A stretch of 64,000 nucleotides of DNA from the NCBI GenBank assembly GCA_965637545.1, contig OZ281497.1, forward strand, positions 20,274,001 to 20,338,000. The letters run 5' to 3'. This stretch comes from Phallusia mammillata. Lineage: Eukaryota. Position numbers and translations under genes: made by a program. The notes under the pieces are model-generated. The model saw only the letters and a list, made by a program, of their open reading frames with translations, was not told where the DNA came from and did no database searches. This document shows positions 49,253 through 64,000 of the stretch, one piece after another (the stretch's first letter is position 1; each line of letters opens with the position of its first letter).

Positions 49253-49612
49253 TTCAATCGAATATTTCGCTTAAGCAAGTCTTCCGTTTCCTGATAATCG
49301 AATATTCCGTTTATTCGAATATTTCGTTTAATCGAATATTCCGGATAATCGAATATTACGGATATTCCGGATAAACGAATATTACGGATAATCGTATATT
49401 CCGTTTGATCGAATATTTCGTTTAAACGAATATTCCGGATAAACGAATATTCCGGATAATCGAATATTCCATTTAATCGAATATTCCGGATAAACGAATA
49501 TTCCGGATAATCGAATATTTCGTTTAATCGAATATTCCGTTTAATGGAATATTCCGGATAAACGAATATTCCGTTCAATCGAATATTTTAGACAATCGAA
49601 TATTTCGCTTGA
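49253..49612. repeat. Minisatellite of ~17-18-bp units (AATCGAATATTCCG[GAT/TTT]); continues at 50304-50389 after a MITE insertion
   Basis: About 20 units built around the palindrome core GAATATTC; produces the spurious repetitive ORF 49102-49578. Confidence 0.9.
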
Positions 49613-54433: not shown

Positions 54434-54750
54434 GCATCACATGATCACAACCCAATGACGCCAGCCATTAAGCGCTGGAGAGCAAAAGCTGATTTTCCAC
54501 GACCTCCTGTACAGGAATAGGCTGGACTCGATTCGGATAGTGAGGCGATCGCTTCTAGCGTATAATCCATGGCGACTGGTGTAAACGACAGGAAATTTGT
54601 CGTCGATACCCTGACGGGGAAGGTTAGATATCGTAGGCGAAAGATCTCTCAAATGTTTACAAAATTTGAGAGCACTGACACCGAAACGTCAACCATGGCT
54701 GGTCATTACTACAGCGATGGTGATAACAAGGAAGGGAGTAGTGTTTTACC
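54434..54750 (+). pseudogene. Degraded copy of the 5' part of the FN3-TG receptor's last exon
   Basis: Homologous to about 36504-36825 (AGAGCAAAAGCTGATTTTCCACGACCTCCTGT..., ATGGCGACTGG, CCGAAACGTCAACCATGGCTGG) with in-frame stops and a deletion. Confidence 0.9.
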
Positions 54751-54768: not shown

Positions 54769-55351
54769 TTACTCGTCCTTTCCACCGGCTCCCGTTTCTT
54801 CTGAAAAATTATTGTCGTCAATTGCTCCTCCATCATTAGACCCAATTCCACCGACGGGTTTGGCAACATGTTTGAATGCTGCAGCAGAAGCTATTTTACT
54901 CACACAATGTACTTGTATGTTAATACGACTCTATGCAAAAAGAAATCTTTGTGTTGCTCTTTTTAATAGCAATAATGCTTTATATCATAGCAATAAAAAT
55001 TTTCGAAACGTTTATTTAATGAAATGTTTGAAATAATTGACATTAGTTTGTAAGAACCAAATTAGGTTTCAACACAAGCAAATGTACTTTGATCATACAT
55101 TTATTGACGGATAGTTATACGTAATTCGACTTGCAAGCGCAGTTTCTTATTCTAGACGTTGATGAGAATATTATTCAAAACATGCAAAAAAAATTTTTAG
55201 GTGTGTTGTGAAGCCTAAACATTTTTAGAATTACGTGAAATCGCAACAAAGCAGAAAATATTTTGTACCTCCAAAAGGCCCGAATTTTGTGATTCTTCCG
55301 TCATTACCGATCATACAGAGTACAGACATCAGCAAATAACAGTTTCAACAT
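54769..55351 (-). pseudogene. Small secreted-peptide gene copy A (2 exons), +1 T frameshift in the signal peptide
   Basis: Exons 55351-55269 and 54878-54769, GT-AG, phase 1. Removing one T from TTATTTGCTG gives MLKLLLLMSVLCMIGNDGRITKFGPFGAFKHVAKPVGGIGSNDGGAIDDNNFSEETGAGGKDE*. Confidence 0.75.
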
Positions 55352-55809
55352 CTTCTTGTTCCTTTGTATGTTCTTGTCACAAACCAATAACTTTTTAGGG
55401 TATGTGATTACACTACGTTGAGTTTCTGCAAAAGTGTTCAAAAGTTCAAACAAAGAAAAACAAGGATAATTTAAGTGGCTACAGATCAGAAAAGTTGGCT
55501 TTCTTTGTTGACTTTTTGTGAGCAAATCTACAAAAATGTTTGCGTATTCGATCGTAGAACAAAATAGAACAAACAATATTGTATTTCAGACAAAACAAAT
55601 TACCCAAAGTTTTAAATCTTTTTTATAATGACAAATATTTTGCGTATGACACAAAGAAAAAACAGTGCGAAAACGTTACTGCGACCTGTACAGGCGTATA
55701 CACAACCAGTTTTTATCTTCAAAGACTCACATGCACCATGCGGCTTTTAATAATGCAAAAAGTAAACTTGCCAACTTCCTCAAAATCTTGTCATGACAAT
55801 GTACGACGG

Positions 55810-56103
55810 TTTGGGGGTAAAAAAATCGAAGAAAAATCCCGTATTCGGTGGGTTTTCGCAGGAATATAGAGGTTTCAAACCGGTTATGACCGGTTTCTGC
55901 CTCCTGTCGAACCCCCAAGCCGGTTGTTTCCACCCGATTTTCGAAAAAATCCTAAGGCCGTAGCCTTTCCGTTTTTTCGATTTTGGGCGGTCAAAAAATC
56001 GAAGAAAAATACGGATTCGGTGGGTTTTCGCTGGAATATTCCGGTTTCAAACCGGTTATGACCGGTTTCTGCCTCTTGTCAAACACCAAAACAGGTTTAA
56101 ACC
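55810..56103. repeat. Palindrome-rich satellite (~170-195-bp units, AAACCGGTTATGACCGGTTTCTGCC...); continues at 60117-60600; shorter copies at ~53870-54030, ~62980-63020, ~63770-63900
   Basis: Unit core at 55878, 56049, about 60224 and 60421; the array is split by the LTR element. Confidence 0.85.
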
Positions 56104-59100
56104 TGTCATGAACGCACACACGTTTAAGCGGTTACCTGTATTGACTGCCACGTTTAAGACGCGGTACACGGTTATATACGAAACGTGACGTCATAACTCA
56201 GGGACGACATCTAGCGGTAAATACATACATCACAACTTCCCTTCGTTTAAATTGAACTTAACTGACGTCTCGAAGGGTAAGGATTCACAATAACATTCAA
56301 TGGACGTAAATGAACACGATTACGCCGATATAATACACCATCACTAGTTTTTACAAGATAAGAGCGATGAGATAACTGTTTTTCTATAGTTCCCTGTTGA
56401 TCCCATAGTTTGTTTTGGGTATTGTAAATTTTTACAGGAGTGTTCACTTGTAATTGCAGCATGTTTCTTGTTCCCCTGTCATAATACTTCTTTTGTTGTT
56501 TTCTTTCTTTTCCAAACGGACGGCAAGTTGAACTTTTTAACTTTTCGATATCCAGGGGCATCGTGTGTCTGATTTGCCGATCCATGAGAAGCTGTGCAGG
56601 CGATTTTCCGCAAAGGAGAGGAGCACTCCTAAATATTAACAAACTTTTGTTAAAATCCTGTACACTGGCGTGAGCTTTTTTAAGTAGTTGCTTCGTTGTC
56701 TGGACACTCCTCTCAGCCAGTCCGTTAGATCGTGGATAATGTGGACTCGAGGTTAAATGAAGAAAGCCCCATTCCTCGGCGAATTTTGCAAACTCCTCAC
56801 TAGAAAACTGAGGACCGTTATCACTGATAACAGTTTCGGGAATTCCAAACCTGGAAAAAATAGTTTTCAAACCACTTATAACAGACGCCGCAGAAGTTGT
56901 AGTCAACGGGGTTACTTCTGGATATCCGGAGTAGTAGTCCACTGTTACCAAAAACATTTTTCGGTTCCAATAGAACAGGTCAGTTGCCACTTTCTGAAAC
57001 GGATAAGAAGGAGCTTGGTGAGGTTCTAACGGTTGGCGTTGTTGCTGTGACCTGAATTTTGCACAAATGGCACAGGAAGAAACCAAACCAGATATGTCGT
57101 TGGATAACCCAGGCCAATATATACTTTCCCGAGCTCGTCCTTTGCATTTTACTTCACCCAAATGGCCTTCATGCACACGTTCTAAAAAATAACTGCGCAT
57201 AGACATTGGAACAACTATTCGAGATCCACGAAACAAAATACCGTCAACAACAGAAAGTTCATTTTTGACATCCCAAAAGGGTTTTGCTAAAACAGGACAA
57301 GCACGCTTATGTAAAGGCCAACCATTATTTACAAGACGCGTCACAATTTGCAACTGTTCGTCACATATGGTTTTACTTTGTAACTTTTGTTTAACTAATG
57401 GCATACAAGCAATAGCGGATACAATTAGATCTACATATTCACATACACTATGACAAGAAAGCGATTGAACGGACACACTGTTCTCCACACATCTTGATAA
57501 CAAATCAGCTGTGTGCATGAATTTACCTGGAGTAAACTCTGCGGTGAAATGAAATCTTTGCAACCGGATCATTAGACGTTGAATGCGCAACGGACAGTTA
57601 TTTAACTCCTTGAGAAACAACGCTATGAGAGGTTTGTGATCAGTTTCTACCACAAACTTCTGACCATAAACATACTGATAAAATCTTTCACATGCAAAGG
57701 TGATAGCAAGCAATTCTTTTTCAATTTGTGCATACCTTGTTTCAGCGGTTGTTAAAGCTCTTGCCGCATAAGCCACTGGCTGCCACATGTTGTCATGCTG
57801 TTGCAAAATTACAGCTCCAAGTCCATGTTTAGATGCGTCTGCCGAAATTTTGATCGATTTCTTGGGGTCGAAAAACCGAAGTACTGGGGCAGTTGTGACC
57901 AGCCGTTTTAAATTCCTCCATTCCATTTCGTGTGCTTGCGTCCACTCCCAGTTGCTCCGTTTATGCAATAACAAACGCAAAGAAGATGTTTTAGTAGACA
58001 AGTCGGAAATGAAACGACCTAGGTACGTGACCATTCCCAAAAATTTCAGCAAGTCACCCTTAGACTGAGGACGCTTTAGTTGCTCTATTGCATGAACTTT
58101 ATTTGGATCAGGTTGAACACCTGAAGCACTAACAACTTCACCAAGAAAAGTAATCTTGTCTACACCGAACACACATTTTTCCTTATTGAGTTTCAGATTA
58201 TTGCGTTGCAAAACCGTTAACACATTTTTAAGCCTCATGTCATGTTCCTGCTTAGTTGAACCCCAAACCACAATATCGTCCATAGAGGTAACAACGCCGT
58301 TCATGTGTTCAAACATCATGTACACCAACTTGTGAAACACTTCTGGCGCAGAACAAATGCCGAACGGCATGCGCAAAAATCTATACCGTCCAAACGGAGT
58401 GTTAAACGTACAAAGCTTAGAACTATCTTCATCCAACTTTACTTGCCAAAACCCAGACAAAGCGTCGAGTTTAGAAAATACTTTAGCATTTGAAAATTGA
58501 CTAATAATTTCTTCTCTAGTCGGAAGACAGAAATGCTCACGCAAAATTGCTTTGTTTAAATCTCGCGGATCTAAGCAAACTCTTAGTTTTCCGTTTTTCT
58601 TTTCTACTATTACAAGAGAGTTCACCCACTTAGTTGGTTCTTCTATTCTTTTGATTACTTGCATGCTTTCCATTCTTTGTAGCTCCTGTTGTAGTTTGTT
58701 TTTAAGTGCAAATGGAATTTTTCTGCTGGGACGGACTACGGGACAAACTCTGCTATCGGTCTTTATTCGGTGACAACCTGGAACACAACCCAACCCTTGA
58801 AATAAATCTGAAAAGCTGGACAGAAAATTTTGTTCGTCACTGACAATAGGTTCCAGTCTATTTATTAGGCCAAGAGTTACTGCTCCATTTAATCCTATAA
58901 TAGGCAATGCATTAATCTCCACAACAACAAATGGTAGAGTAAATGATTGCTCTCTGTATTGAAGTGTTAAACTAATTGTCCCACAAACTGGAATATGGTG
59001 GCCAGTATATGAGATCAATCGAATATTAGTAGAAGAAACATATGGACGTTCCTGAAGTTTTTGAAAATCATTCCGTGACAAAATATTAACTTGGGCTCCC

Positions 59101-60116
59101 GTATCTATCTTAAAACGAAGTGTACATGAAAGCACAAAAATGTCAACAAGCCAATCTTTTGGTGAACTAGTAGTACTTACAGATTGCATGTTGTACGTCT
59201 GAATTGTATCCGCGCGTTGCGCTTGCGGGTGATTAGCTGCACTGCAACATCGAGCGAAGTGGTTTCTTCCACCACACTTCAAGCATCGCCTTCCCCAGGC
59301 AGGACACGCTCTGACGTCATGTCGCAAGGCACAAAATCTGCAAACTCGAGGCGCTGGTAATTGATTACCACGTGGTTCGCGTTGAACAGCATCCAAGCTA
59401 AAACTTTTAGAATTTGTTGATCGAAACATTGTCATTTGCGATCTTACTGTTTCGTTTGTTATGCACATTTTAATAGCTTTTTCAAGCGTTAGTTCCACTT
59501 CCCGCAGCAAACTTTGACGAAGTTGATCACACTTGATACCAATAATAATTTTGTCTCGGATTAATGAGTCGCAAAGTTCACCGAAATCACAGCTTTTAGA
59601 CAGTTTTTTTAAATCGGTTATAAAAACATCTATTCTTTCACCATCATTTTGATTTCTAGAAAAAAACCTGTATCGCTCGCTGGTGATATTCTTCCTCGGA
59701 CAACAGTAGCTTTCGAAGGCATTGACCACAGTTTCAAAGTGCATTTCTTGTCCTTCTTCAAATTTAAATGTTGAGTGGATGGTTTGACCTTGCTCTCCCA
59801 ACACGTGGAGCAACATAGATGTTTTAACTTTTGCAGCCTTTCCGTCATAACCAACAGCTGTCAAATAAAGCCTAAATCCCCTAATAAACTTAACCCAGTT
59901 TTGTGACACATTGCCACTCCATTGCATAGCTTCCGGCAGTGAGAACGAACCTTCCATTTTATTTGAAAAACCACTTCTGACACCATGTCATGAACGCACA
60001 CACGTTTAAGCGGTTACCTGTATTGACTGCCACGTTTAAGACGCGGTACACGGTTATATACGAAACGTGACGTCATAACTCAGGGACGACATCTAGCGGT
60101 AAATACATACATCACA
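56104..60116 (-). mobile_element. Full-length Ty3/Gypsy LTR retrotransposon (Mag-like), 4013 bp
   Basis: Identical 131-bp LTRs at 56104-56234 and 59986-60116 with TG...CA ends. 5-bp TSD AAACC (56099-56103; 60117-60121). PBS TGGTGTCAGAAGTGG (59985-59971), complementary to a tRNA-Leu 3' end. Purine tract AAACGAAGGGAAG next to the 3' LTR. Confidence 0.97.
56247..59957 (-). CDS. Gag-Pol polyprotein (2 zinc knuckles, protease, RT, RNase H, integrase), 1236 aa
   Basis: CRFCALRHDVRAC and CLKCGGRNHFARC knuckles; KIDTGAQVNIL protease; LDALSGFWQV and TSMDDIVVWG RT; ADASKHGLGAV RNase H; HEGHLG...CAIC, ATDLF, SDNGPQF, NGLAERSV integrase. PR-RT-RH-IN order is Gypsy-type. Confidence 0.97.
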   Translation of the reverse strand: MEGSFSLPEAMQWSGNVSQNWVKFIRGFRLYLTAVGYDGKAAKVKTSMLLHVLGEQGQTIHSTFKFEEGQEMHFETVVNAFESYCCPRKNITSERYRFFSRNQNDGERIDVFITDLKKLSKSCDFGELCDSLIRDKIIIGIKCDQLRQSLLREVELTLEKAIKMCITNETVRSQMTMFRSTNSKSFSLDAVQREPRGNQLPAPRVCRFCALRHDVRACPAWGRRCLKCGGRNHFARCCSAANHPQAQRADTIQTYNMQSVSTTSSPKDWLVDIFVLSCTLRFKIDTGAQVNILSRNDFQKLQERPYVSSTNIRLISYTGHHIPVCGTISLTLQYREQSFTLPFVVVEINALPIIGLNGAVTLGLINRLEPIVSDEQNFLSSFSDLFQGLGCVPGCHRIKTDSRVCPVVRPSRKIPFALKNKLQQELQRMESMQVIKRIEEPTKWVNSLVIVEKKNGKLRVCLDPRDLNKAILREHFCLPTREEIISQFSNAKVFSKLDALSGFWQVKLDEDSSKLCTFNTPFGRYRFLRMPFGICSAPEVFHKLVYMMFEHMNGVVTSMDDIVVWGSTKQEHDMRLKNVLTVLQRNNLKLNKEKCVFGVDKITFLGEVVSASGVQPDPNKVHAIEQLKRPQSKGDLLKFLGMVTYLGRFISDLSTKTSSLRLLLHKRSNWEWTQAHEMEWRNLKRLVTTAPVLRFFDPKKSIKISADASKHGLGAVILQQHDNMWQPVAYAARALTTAETRYAQIEKELLAITFACERFYQYVYGQKFVVETDHKPLIALFLKELNNCPLRIQRLMIRLQRFHFTAEFTPGKFMHTADLLSRCVENSVSVQSLSCHSVCEYVDLIVSAIACMPLVKQKLQSKTICDEQLQIVTRLVNNGWPLHKRACPVLAKPFWDVKNELSVVDGILFRGSRIVVPMSMRSYFLERVHEGHLGEVKCKGRARESIYWPGLSNDISGLVSSCAICAKFRSQQQRQPLEPHQAPSYPFQKVATDLFYWNRKMFLVTVDYYSGYPEVTPLTTTSAASVISGLKTIFSRFGIPETVISDNGPQFSSEEFAKFAEEWGFLHLTSSPHYPRSNGLAERSVQTTKQLLKKAHASVQDFNKSLLIFRSAPLLCGKSPAQLLMDRQIRHTMPLDIEKLKSSTCRPFGKERKQQKKYYDRGTRNMLQLQVNTPVKIYNTQNKLWDQQGTIEKQLSHRSYLVKTSDGVLYRRNRVHLRPLNVIVNPYPSRRQLSSI

Positions 60117-60608
60117 AAACCGGTTTCCAAAATCGAAAATTTCGATCCGATTTTCGAAAAAAACCTAAGGCTATCGAAGAAAAATGCGGTTTTCGGAGGG
60201 TTTTCGCGGGAATATTCCGGTTTCAAGCCGGTTATGACCGGTTTCTTTCTCCAGCCGAACTCCCAAACCGGTTCAAACTGGTTTTCAAAATCGAAAATTT
60301 CCACCCGATTTTCGAAAAAACTTTAAGGTTATAGCCTTTCCGTTTTTTCGATTGTGGGGAGTCGAAAAATCGAAGAAAAATCCGGTTTTCGGTGGGTTTT
60401 CGCGAGAATATACCGTATTCAAACCGGTTATGACCGGTTTCTGCCTCCTGCCGAACCCCCAAACCGGTTCAAACCGGTTTTCAAAATCGAAAATGTTTAC
60501 CCGATTTAAACCGGTTTTCAAAATCGAAAATTTTGATCCGATTTTCGAAAAAAACCTAAGGTTTTTTTTTTTTTTTTTTTTTCGATTTTGGGGGGTCAAA
60601 AAATCGAT

Positions 60609-60905
60609 GACGGGGAAAGTAAGATATCGTGGGCGAAAAATCTTTTGAATGAACTTATTGTTAGATTTGAGTACTGACCCCGAAACGTCAACCATGGCTG
60701 GTCATGACTAACAAGGAAGGGGGTAGTTTACTTCCCCCACCTCCAACCCCACCCCTTACTCCAGGGCTTCCAGATAAGTTTGTCAGCAAAGAAAAGAAAC
60801 AAGAATTCGCGAAAAATTGAACATGTTTCACGAAATGGCACTGCGCTGCAGGGGTCATGGGTCAAACGTTAAAAGTCATCCAACCTTTGATCCCAGTACC
60901 AATTT
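60609..60905 (+). pseudogene. Degraded copy of the 3' part of the FN3-TG receptor's last exon
   Basis: Homologous to about 36682-37001 (CCACCTCCAACCCCACCCCTTACTCC, AACATGTTTCACGAAATGGC, GGGGTCATGGGTCAAACGTT, ACCAATTTG) with stops and indels. Confidence 0.9.
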
Positions 60906-61418
60906 GCAAAACCTGTGCTGCGGGTCGCTTTGTATTTGGTATGGACGCGATGAAAGGCTATGCAGTAGCATATATCTACGTGCAGATCTTGAATTCGTGA
61001 AGAATAAAACCGAAACCTGGATTTTGCTCCTTGTAGAAAGACAAAACGAAATTAGCCTATTTGTTTAAATTATTTTATGTGACCCAGGAAACACTGAATA
61101 TTTTATCATCACTGGCGCAATATGATGCTATTTTCACAATATGAAATTTCGAATGACAACGTCTCTGAAAAATATTGACGTTAGTAAACTTGGAATAATA
61201 GTCCAACACCTGCCTTTTAAATTGCAACACAAAGACCCTTTATGAGCTTAATGGCATTAGTACATTATTATGCCGAATCTACGCATGTTTGCATGTTTGC
61301 ATTTTTCTGTCGACTGTCGCTTGACTTTCAACAACAAAACAAAAAAACAAAATGAATATTATTAGTGCGTTGTTTTATTTCTTCCCTCTGCGCTGCATTT
61401 TAGTTGCAATCTTTAATT

Positions 61419-62027
61419 TTATTCGTTCTCTCCGCCGGTTCCCGGTCTCTCTGAAAAATTATTCTCGTCAATTGCTCCTCCATCATTAGACCCAATTCCA
61501 CCGACGGGTTGGGCACCATCATCGGAATCTGCGGCAGAAACTATTTTACTCACACAATGTATTTGCATGTAAAAAATGACTCTCAATTAAAAGAAATCAT
61601 TGTGCTGCTCATTTTGATAGCATTAATGTTTTATATTATGACAATAACAGCGTTTGCAACGTTTATTTAATAAAATGGCCACAAAATGTTTGAAATAAAT
61701 GACATTAGTTTGAAAAACTCCATTTAGGTTTCAAATCCAGCAAATGCACTTTGATCTTTGATCATACATTTATTGACGGATAGTTATACGTAATTATGTA
61801 ACTTTTTGACGTGCAAACGTTGTTTCTTAATTTGGACTTTGCTGACGATATTATTCGAAACACGCAAAATCCAAAATTTCCATGTGTGTGTGAAGCCTAA
61901 ACATTATTAGCATTACGTGAAATCCCAACAAGCAGAATATATTTGTACCATAAACACGTAGTACGGGGTATCTTCCGTCAGTGCCGATCATACAGAGTAC
62001 AGACATCAGCAATAACAGTTTCAACAT
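61419..62027 (-). CDS. Small secreted-peptide gene copy B (2 exons, intact, 62 aa)
   Basis: Exons 62027-61949 and 61528-61419 (G|GTACAA donor, TTTCTGCCGCAG| acceptor, phase 1) encode MLKLLLLMSVLCMIGTDGRYPVLRVYDSDDGAQPVGGIGSNDGGAIDENNFSERPGTGGENE*. Hydrophobic signal peptide; splice sites and exon-2 length (110 nt) are conserved in paralog A. Confidence 0.75.
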
Positions 62028-62430
62028 CTTCTTGTTGCTTTGTATCTTCTTGTCACAAACCAACTACTTTTTAGGGTATGTGATTACACCACGATGGTTT
62101 TCTGCAAGAGTGTTTAAAATGGCAAACGAAAAAAAAGATTGTGTGTTGGCGACGTTAATCACTGCCGTGAATTGTTGAAAGTGTTTACAACAAAAGAGAT
62201 CAGAATTTTTTTTTAATTTTGAAAAGTTGTCTATCTTTGTATGACTTTTTGTGAGCAAACGAAAATGTTTTACGTATTTGATCGTAAAACAAAATAAAAC
62301 AAACAATATTGTATTTCAGACACTAATTACCCAAACTTTAAATATTTTTTGATGATGACAAATATTTTGCGTATGGTACAAAGTAAAACAGTGCAAAAAC
62401 GTTATTACTGTTACCTGCACAGATTGCGAG

Positions 62431-64000
62431 ACACAACAAGTTTTTATCATCAAAGATTCACATGCATCACACGGTGCGACTTTCAATAATGGAAATATAA
62501 AACTGGCTACCTTCCTTTAAAATATTGTCATGACAATGTATGACAAACTGCCGTCAGCAGTTTGCATTAAAACTTCGCTAGCAAATAAGACAGCTTGTAG
62601 CGATCAATATGGCAAATCATTACGTAGGTTTCGCCATGTAAAAATGTTTACACTGTTTGTATGAATGTTTGTACTTTGGTTAATTGACAGTAAAAATAAC
62701 AACTCACAAAAGCCAATACCATTGCGGTTATATTTGCCCCTTGAATAAAGATATATCTCCAACCTTTTTTAAACTATATTTACAACTGATTTACCGAAAT
62801 GATTGAAAAAGATAAATATATACTGAGTTTTAGCTAACAACTCAGTATATTTATCTTTTTCCAATCATTTCGGTAAATCGGTTGTAAAAGACCATTAGCA
62901 TAAGTGAGAGCAAGCGTTTTTAAGTTGTAATACATTTGCAAATTATTTTCATGCAGAATGCAGAAATGAAACACCGATTTCTGCCCCCTACCGAACCCCC
63001 AAACAGGTTTAAACCGGATTTTGAAGCAACAAATTTACCTGCTCAGAATTGCGAAGGTGTAGACACAACAAGTTTTTATCATCAAAGATTAATTATCAAT
63101 GCGCTTCATATGCATCACACGGTGCCGCTTTTAATAATGAAAAAGGAAACTTGCTAACTTCCTTAAAAACTTGTGATAACAATGTACCTCAAAGTGCCCG
63201 TCAGCAGTTGCATTCAGAACTTTATTAACAAACAACACAACTTGTAGCGATCAATATGGCAAACCATTACAGAGCTATAGCCAAATAAAACATGTTTTCA
63301 CTTTTTGCATATAACGCATTGGTTAATTGCAAGTGAACGAATCGCAGAACCGCAACACACAAAAGCCAATGTTTTTGCGGTAATATTCGTTCCTTGAATA
63401 AAGATATAACTCTTTTTGAATTATATTTACAACCGATTAACCAATTTTTTGGAACAGGATCAAAATCCTGAGTTGTGGGATAAAATAAGCACTGCATGTC
63501 ATGTGCAATCGGCAATTTCTTTTTTACGACGATTGGCATAAGGGAGAACAAGCGTTTTTATGTTAAAATACATTTACAAATTACTTTCATGCAGAAAGCA
63601 GAAATTAAACGCACAATACCACTTTTTAGTTCTTTTTTTCTTTACAGTGCGCAGACAAAATATGCGTGCGCAAAAACAACTTAATCTTGTGACAAAGTAA
63701 ACGACATTTGCAACAGAATATTTTGCACATTAGAATACGGGGACTGGGTGCCAAGCAGTTTCTCGTTTAACGGTTTTCGGGGTCCTAAATTTAAAAAAAA
63801 TTCGGTTTTGAGTGGGTTTTCGCCGGAATATTCCAGTTTCAAACTAATTTTAGCCGGTTTCTGCCACTCACCGAACCCCCAAATAGATTTACACCAGAAT
63901 CGAAAACAACAAGTTTTCCTGCACATAATTGTGGGGGCGTAGACACAAAAAAATTTAATCATCAAAGATTTTATCAATGCGCTTCATAAGCACGCTTCAT
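62431..64000. repeat. Tandemly repeated upstream module of the peptide gene (units begin at ~62431, ~63063, ~63943)
   Basis: Recurring blocks ACACAACAAGTTTTTATCATCAAAGATT, CATGCATCACACGGTGC, GTCAGCAGTTGCATTCAGAAC, TTGTAGCGATCAATATGGCAAA and CCTTGAATAAAGATATA; also present at about 53640-53851 and 55700-55800. Confidence 0.8.
62779..62888. repeat. 110-bp near-perfect palindrome centred on TTAGCTAA
   Basis: 55-bp arms pair apart from one substitution and a few small indels. Confidence 0.9.

Follow-up and report, generated by a model that had tools for sequence, protein, structure and literature searches.

We examined a 64,000-nucleotide stretch of the Phallusia mammillata genome (contig OZ281497.1 of assembly GCA_965637545.1, positions 20,274,001 to 20,338,000 of the forward strand; hereafter the window), near the end of which lie two related units, copies A and B. 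We put at even chances the reading that these units belong to a young gene family, restricted to its lineage, whose very small two-exon members encode secreted prepropeptides; in this reading copy B and a third copy, C, located outside the window, are intact, copy A is a recent pseudogene and one further copy is reduced to a stump. That the units are, or recently were, real coding genes we consider likely. A host-defence role of antimicrobial type is plausible and is the likeliest single function; antimicrobial or defence activity of the product is put forward tentatively.

The units share one plan: an ATG, an 18-residue hydrophobic leader ending in (T/N)DG, a phase-1 GT..AG intron, a variable segment and an acidic tail. 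The sequence-only reading had proposed this two-exon layout of signal, variable segment and acidic tail with the splice junction 61949>61528, and the splice sites and reading frames can be read accordingly in copy B, whose features are as follows.

62102..62107, minus strand: TTGCAG, candidate 3' splice acceptor at the 5' end of the mature mRNA, suggested by its conservation.
62028..62101, minus strand: putative 5' untranslated region (UTR), 74 nt, 89% identical to copy A and 97% to copy C.
61974..62027, minus strand: signal-peptide codons 1-18, ending in GTDG, 96% identical to copy A and 98% to copy C.
61949..61973, minus strand: hypervariable exon-1 segment (RYPVLRVY and the first base of the split Asp codon), 48% identical to copy A.
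61529..61948, minus strand: intron, 420 nt, GT..AG, phase 1, 84% identical to copy A.
61419..61528, minus strand: exon 2, acidic Gly/Asp/Asn-rich tail and stop by translation, net charge -8 with the split codon.
61374..61379, minus strand: AATAAA in the sequence 40 nt past the stop codon, also present in copy C and missing from copy A.

Copy B lies on the minus strand with its ATG at 62027 and has a product of 62 amino acids (aa). Exon 1 (62027..61949, 79 nt) translates into the 18-residue leader, ending in GTDG, followed by RYPVLRVY. The donor, G|GTACAA, begins its intron at 61948 and the acceptor, TTTCTGCCGCAG|, ends at 61529; exon 2 (61528..61419) then encodes DSDDGAQPVGGIGSNDGGAIDENNFSERPGTGGENE and a stop, the first Asp of the tail being specified by the phase-1 split codon G|AT (GAT). 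An in-frame stop precedes the ATG by 13 codons in both B and C (TAG in B), and no upstream ATG occurs within 120 nt. The leader of copy B has a mean Kyte-Doolittle hydropathy of 2.34 over residues 2-15. Both intact leaders comprise a Lys-bearing n-region, a 12-residue hydrophobic core and a c-region, TDG, compatible with the -3/-1 rule; applied by eye, this rule predicts cleavage after (T/N)DG. The TTGCAG element 5' of the gene is kept in A, B, C and the stump, and A and B, 81% identical upstream of it, are 89% identical downstream. This element is a candidate acceptor either for spliced-leader trans-splicing or for an upstream exon.

A search for further paralogues had been suggested and was carried out over the whole 240-Mb assembly, using DNA queries and protein queries from each exon. 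Either exon found this family alone: copies A, B and C, one stump and one scrap. Copy C is full and intact, on the plus strand (C4:20344001-20344612, 6 kb past the window end). Its exon 1 ends in ...GTDGRHLILWRFC, its tail differs from that of B at two residues, and its product has 63 aa. The earlier expectation of precursors of 62-63 aa thus fits B and C; it fails for copy A, which is not an intact 63-aa precursor (see below). B and C stand head to head within a 2.8-kb inverted duplication of 97% identity (window 60173-62972 and C4 20343052-20345832).

The stump is an exon 1 (L004, C4:20348016-93) with the leader MLKLLLLIALLCLVGTDAG, which continues into a satellite of 185-238-bp units. All five changes in the hydrophobic core of this leader retain a hydrophobic or small neutral residue (5/5), which hints at a coding origin. 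The scrap, L005 (C4:16111938-16111976, 39 nt), lies 4 Mb away and matches the end of the 5' UTR and the first signal codons at 95% identity. No exon 2 was found near it, and it is probably a dispersed fragment.

The pattern of substitution among the copies is probably that of a coding gene, judged on segments that were drawn from the gene model and not chosen blind. Copies B and C differ by 24 substitutions in 1777 aligned bases (98.6% identity over 1.78 kb). Five of these, all replacements, fall within the 25-nt variable end of exon 1, which also carries a 3-bp in-frame indel, as against 19 in the other 1752 bases (Fisher p=1.3e-5). Counted by coding status, the differences amount to 8 in 189 bases of coding sequence versus 16 in 1587 non-coding bases (p=0.0023). 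The comparison between A and B resolves three rates. The variable part, with 21 differences in 45 bases (53% identity), evolves faster than the intron (60/387; p=4.9e-6), and the signal and tail core, with 3 in 102, evolve more slowly than the intron (p=1.7e-4). The introns of A and B are separated by indels of 1, 1, 1, 3, 11, 7, 11 and 1 nt; length differences within the coding parts, the lesion in copy A apart, preserve the frame. Both comparisons give statistical backing to the arrangement of conserved signal, variable core and conserved tail that had been described from the sequence. As an alternative coding frame, we considered one that reads through the intron (58 aa in B); it is not kept in A, owing to 1-nt indels early in the intron, and was rejected.

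Copy A shares the layout and splice sites of copy B and is broken, as its features show.

55269..55351, minus strand: exon 1, 83 nt, with one surplus T in the run 55334-55336, which shifts the frame and brings a stop after 15 codons.
54879..55268, minus strand: intron, 390 nt, GT..AG, as read in the sequence.
54769..54878, minus strand: exon 2, open frame (FKHVAKPVGG... tail) and stop, with the 3' flank replaced 5 nt past the stop.

The run at 55334-55336 is TTT in copy A and TT in B, C and the stump; the surplus T falls in signal codon 6 and destroys the signal, and the frame from the ATG reads MLKLLFADVCTLYDR before it ends. In the DNA run X2, a 526-nt contig spans 55088-55613 with 0 differences and no gap relative to copy A, so the extra T is present in the reads and is not a slip of the assembler; a deeper X2 contig, which derives from B and C, lacks one base at 55334. 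Five nt past its stop, copy A joins a repeat that in B is located ~670 nt further downstream, and the 3' flank with AATAAA has therefore been lost. Since the splice sites and the exon-2 frame are still intact, copy A is best read as a recent pseudogene. A downstream in-frame ATG was considered as a rescue and rejected: the hydrophobic core would be 6 residues, too short for a signal.

These lesions bear on the cationic, Phe/Gly/His-containing segment of copy A, which carried the argument for an antimicrobial peptide. That segment, RITKFGPFG / AFKHVAKPVGG (+4), occurs solely in the frame downstream of the frameshift, in a copy that is also 3'-truncated. Copy A alone has some 19 residues at +4 after the signal region, with 2 Pro and 4-5 Gly, and copy A is broken.

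Just downstream of copy A lies a 56-nt repeat piece (54664-54719; also near 60690-60740), with which a 167-nt contig of the RNA-guessed runs X3 (depth 454) and X8 (depth 41) agrees at 90-95%. This suggests that some copy of the repeat elsewhere is abundantly transcribed.

For the intact copies, a route to a small secreted peptide can be proposed. The 18-residue leader would take the 62-63-aa product into the endoplasmic reticulum and be cut off after TDG, and a propeptide of 44-45 aa (net charge -5 to -6) would remain. Its head, rich in Arg and in aromatic or hydrophobic residues, is 8-9 residues long and different in each copy: up to the first Asp it reads RYPVLRVY (8 aa) in B and RHLILWRFC (9 aa) in C, each with a net charge of +2. 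The conserved acidic Gly/Asp/Asn tail (net -7 to -8; the exon-2 product has -8 in B, -7 in C and -4 in A) may neutralise or chaperone the short peptide in storage. A cut N-terminal of the first Asp (..RVY|DSDDG in B, ..RFC|DSDDG in C), as in styelins and clavanins, would free the peptide. Because changes accumulate in the variable core faster than in the intron, and in the signal and tail core more slowly, the freed peptide would most likely meet a fast-changing partner.

The proposed route is broadly that of known ascidian antimicrobial precursors, which consist of a signal, an active cationic peptide and an anionic proregion and lack basic processing motifs (PMC7387483). Ci-MAM, Ci-PAP and the 22 candidates described from Ciona have 50-100 aa, a family-conserved signal, a variable active peptide and an anionic C-terminal proregion, as predicted for B and C; they also share with B and C the lack of a basic processing motif and the acidic residues at the boundary (PMC7387483). 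They differ in that we found no sequence similarity and that the published signal consensus sequences are unlike this leader. Their active part is an amphipathic helix of 18-30 aa, whereas that of B and C has 8-9 aa at +2, and their proregion is a predicted anionic helix, whereas the B and C tail is Gly-rich.

In styelins and clavanins the cut falls on the N-terminal side of D and DD (PMC7387483). The clavanins and styelins of Styela clava and botryllin of Botryllus are blood-cell prepropeptides with such a cut, at a boundary like that of B and C (PMC7387483, PMC9966394). Their mature peptides, 23-32 residues long, helical and rich in His or Lys, are unlike the B and C heads, and no homology was detected.

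The intact copies thus have the anionic C-terminal proregion and, at the predicted cleavage site, the acidic boundary without a basic motif, and they lack a cationic amphipathic helix of 18-30 residues. No homology to a described ascidian antimicrobial family was found in word, Pfam, Atlas or profile searches. The analogy drawn in the sequence-only reading is therefore partly supported: the layout and the Asp boundary stand, the intact heads are only 8-9 aa long at +2, and the likeness would be a working one, not membership of a described family.

The distribution of substitutions has counterparts outside the ascidians. Frog families of preprodermaseptin type and cone-snail toxin families likewise keep signal and propiece conserved while the mature codons outpace neighbouring non-coding DNA, and the same may apply here; they are unrelated to the present family in sequence and taxon, and only two live genes are compared here. 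The concept of a conserved signal with a hypermutable mature domain is cited in the ascidian literature (PMC7387483, its ref. 23). Hypervariability concentrated in one short segment of otherwise near-identical copies is a trait of defence-peptide and toxin families.

Several observations weigh against a functional peptide family, the first of them concerning expression. Sampled words of copy B had a share of 0.00 in all 12 RNA-guessed runs, which carry the same species label, where about 0.4 is expected for a spliced transcript; the tissues of these runs are coded, and contigs show presence and not absence. Two DNA-like runs (X1 and X2) do contain copy B words. Contigs of X3, X6 and X8 and of the DNA run X2 were placed on copy A at 80% likeness, so that B or C transcripts would match as well; the contigs of X3, X6 and X8 covered no exon, and X3 and X8 matched just 54664-54719.

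Relatives were equally lacking in searches run exon by exon. A word search with exon 2 (a 41-aa query) returned no relative, Pfam assigned neither exon to a family, and the best score in the ESM Atlas was 0.80, under the useful range. The profile of the three tails, run against 1.84 billion representative proteins, gave a single match, P0001, judged to be chance. The absence of direct homology noted from the sequence alone is thus upheld, and the sequence comparisons reveal no conservation of the family beyond this genome. The peptide strings of the family did not occur in the literature searched.

Two candidate likenesses were rejected. P0001 is a 250-aa bacterial-type zinc-ribbon repeat protein with CxxC in place of the Gly of the tail, and three repeats contribute to its summed score. 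An RTX-like calcium-binding motif in GGIGSNDGG is a single imperfect unit with no Pfam match.

The remaining points on this side concern the copies and their surroundings. The donor GTACAA departs from consensus at +4 to +6. One of the three copies is already dead, and the region of the family is dense in repeats and duplications, with an assembly gap close by. The predicted free peptides of B and C, at 8-9 residues and +2, are atypical of the known helical antimicrobial peptides of ascidians. Finally, the cluster of differences between B and C could represent a short gene-conversion patch from another copy rather than selection on point mutations.

The strongest alternative, which we regard as doubtful but serious, is that there is no working gene: the units would be chance or decaying open reading frames in a 2.8-kb segment recently duplicated within a region rich in satellites and transposons, and would give no stable spliced mRNA. 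The RNA-guessed runs without exons, the lack of relatives in all four kinds of search, the off-consensus donor, the frameshifted and 3'-truncated copy A and the stump that ends in satellite all fit this account, and the intact frames of B and C prove little, the copies being so alike. It does not readily explain the mosaic of conservation, in which the signal and tail core exceed the intron and the intron exceeds the variable core, with boundaries that fit the coding model. Nor does it explain why B and C differ in length by an in-frame change, or why a copy whose intron has diverged by 16% retains the splice sites and the phase. The RNA runs, moreover, are few and small and may miss adult immune cells.

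It is improbable that the function resides in the acidic tail or in the 44-aa anionic product as a whole, for instance as a secreted matrix protein, a metal- or calcium-binding protein or a tunic component, with the N-terminal variability reflecting relaxed constraint beside the site of signal cleavage. Conservation is highest in the tail core (PVGGIGSNDGGAI), which holds the longest identical run in the A-B alignment (46 nt), the secreted product is net -5 to -6, and the site at which a peptide would be cleaved off is only putative. The variable part, however, outpaces the intron, which is beyond what relaxed constraint alone gives, and variation extends to the final 16 codons of the tail, where A and B are separated by 7 replacements and 3 silent changes. 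No known acidic matrix or calcium-binding family was matched in Pfam or in the profile search.

Very little speaks for a neuropeptide or hormone precursor, which had been named as another option: the precursor is small and secreted and copy A has a Gly after its variable segment, but B and C contain no KR, RR, KK or RXXR site, which counts against such a precursor, have no Gly at the Asp boundary, match no neuropeptide family in Pfam or the profile search, and are hypervariable in the putative active part, the least conserved one. The active part of a neuropeptide is typically conserved.

A more specific version of the peptide-family reading is a long shot: B and C may be ribosomally made precursors from which ultrashort blood-cell peptides, 8-9 residues long, aromatic and rich in Arg, would be cut before Asp and then modified or cross-linked at a C-terminal Tyr (B) or Cys (C), like plicatamide, morulin or tunichrome. 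The predicted head of copy B is, like plicatamide, an octapeptide whose last residue is Tyr or derives from it, and the acidic tail follows it directly. Halocidin and dicynthaurin, ascidian peptides with a single Cys, work as disulfide dimers, and the terminal Cys of copy C is reminiscent of them. Plicatamide itself, from Styela plicata, is an aromatic and basic blood-cell octapeptide with a C-terminal dehydrodopamine derived from Tyr, and its class has been termed unexplored as regards biosynthesis (PMC3039461). It has no sequence likeness to copy B and comes from a different ascidian order, and the comparison serves as a lead only. If this version proved true, the family would provide the first genetic precursor for this class of sea-squirt peptides, diversified by a 25-nt hypervariable segment.

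More generally, if expressed, these genes would count as one more orphan family encoding secreted peptides of effector type, in a chordate without adaptive immunity. Many orphan precursors of this kind are already on record for sea squirts, and the family adds one member, not a new principle. As copies that are 98.6% identical and differ almost only in the 8-9 released residues, B and C offer a natural experiment on selection versus patchy gene conversion in the diversity of defence peptides. Peptides as short as those predicted cost little to synthesise and can be tested in sea-water salt.

Repeats also mark the surroundings of the family. Between B and C (L006:1-5100), nested direct repeats of 2 kb, 99.9% identical, flank a 200-N assembly gap (L006:1399-1598). 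The assembly there may be uncertain or collapsed, and more copies may be hidden in it. The satellite of ~185-238-bp units (AACCGGTTTG...-rich) occurs at 55807-56100, 60118-60640 and L006:7400-10000 and at the stump; it borders every peptide-gene copy and cuts off the stump, and it may drive local duplications and deletions.

Between copies A and B, embedded in the satellite array, is a 4-kb minus-strand retrotransposon of Ty3/gypsy type with long terminal repeats (LTRs) (window 56101-60117). A gag-pol frame of 1236 aa runs through it without interruption (Pfam RVT_1, RNase H and integrase), and its LTRs of 135 and 136 nt are 99.3% alike, suggesting a very recent insertion. On the far side of copy A, between the peptide cluster and a neighbouring gene of NLR type, a tandem array at 49293-49604 has a period of 17/34 nt, with some 9-18 copies and 76-78% matches.

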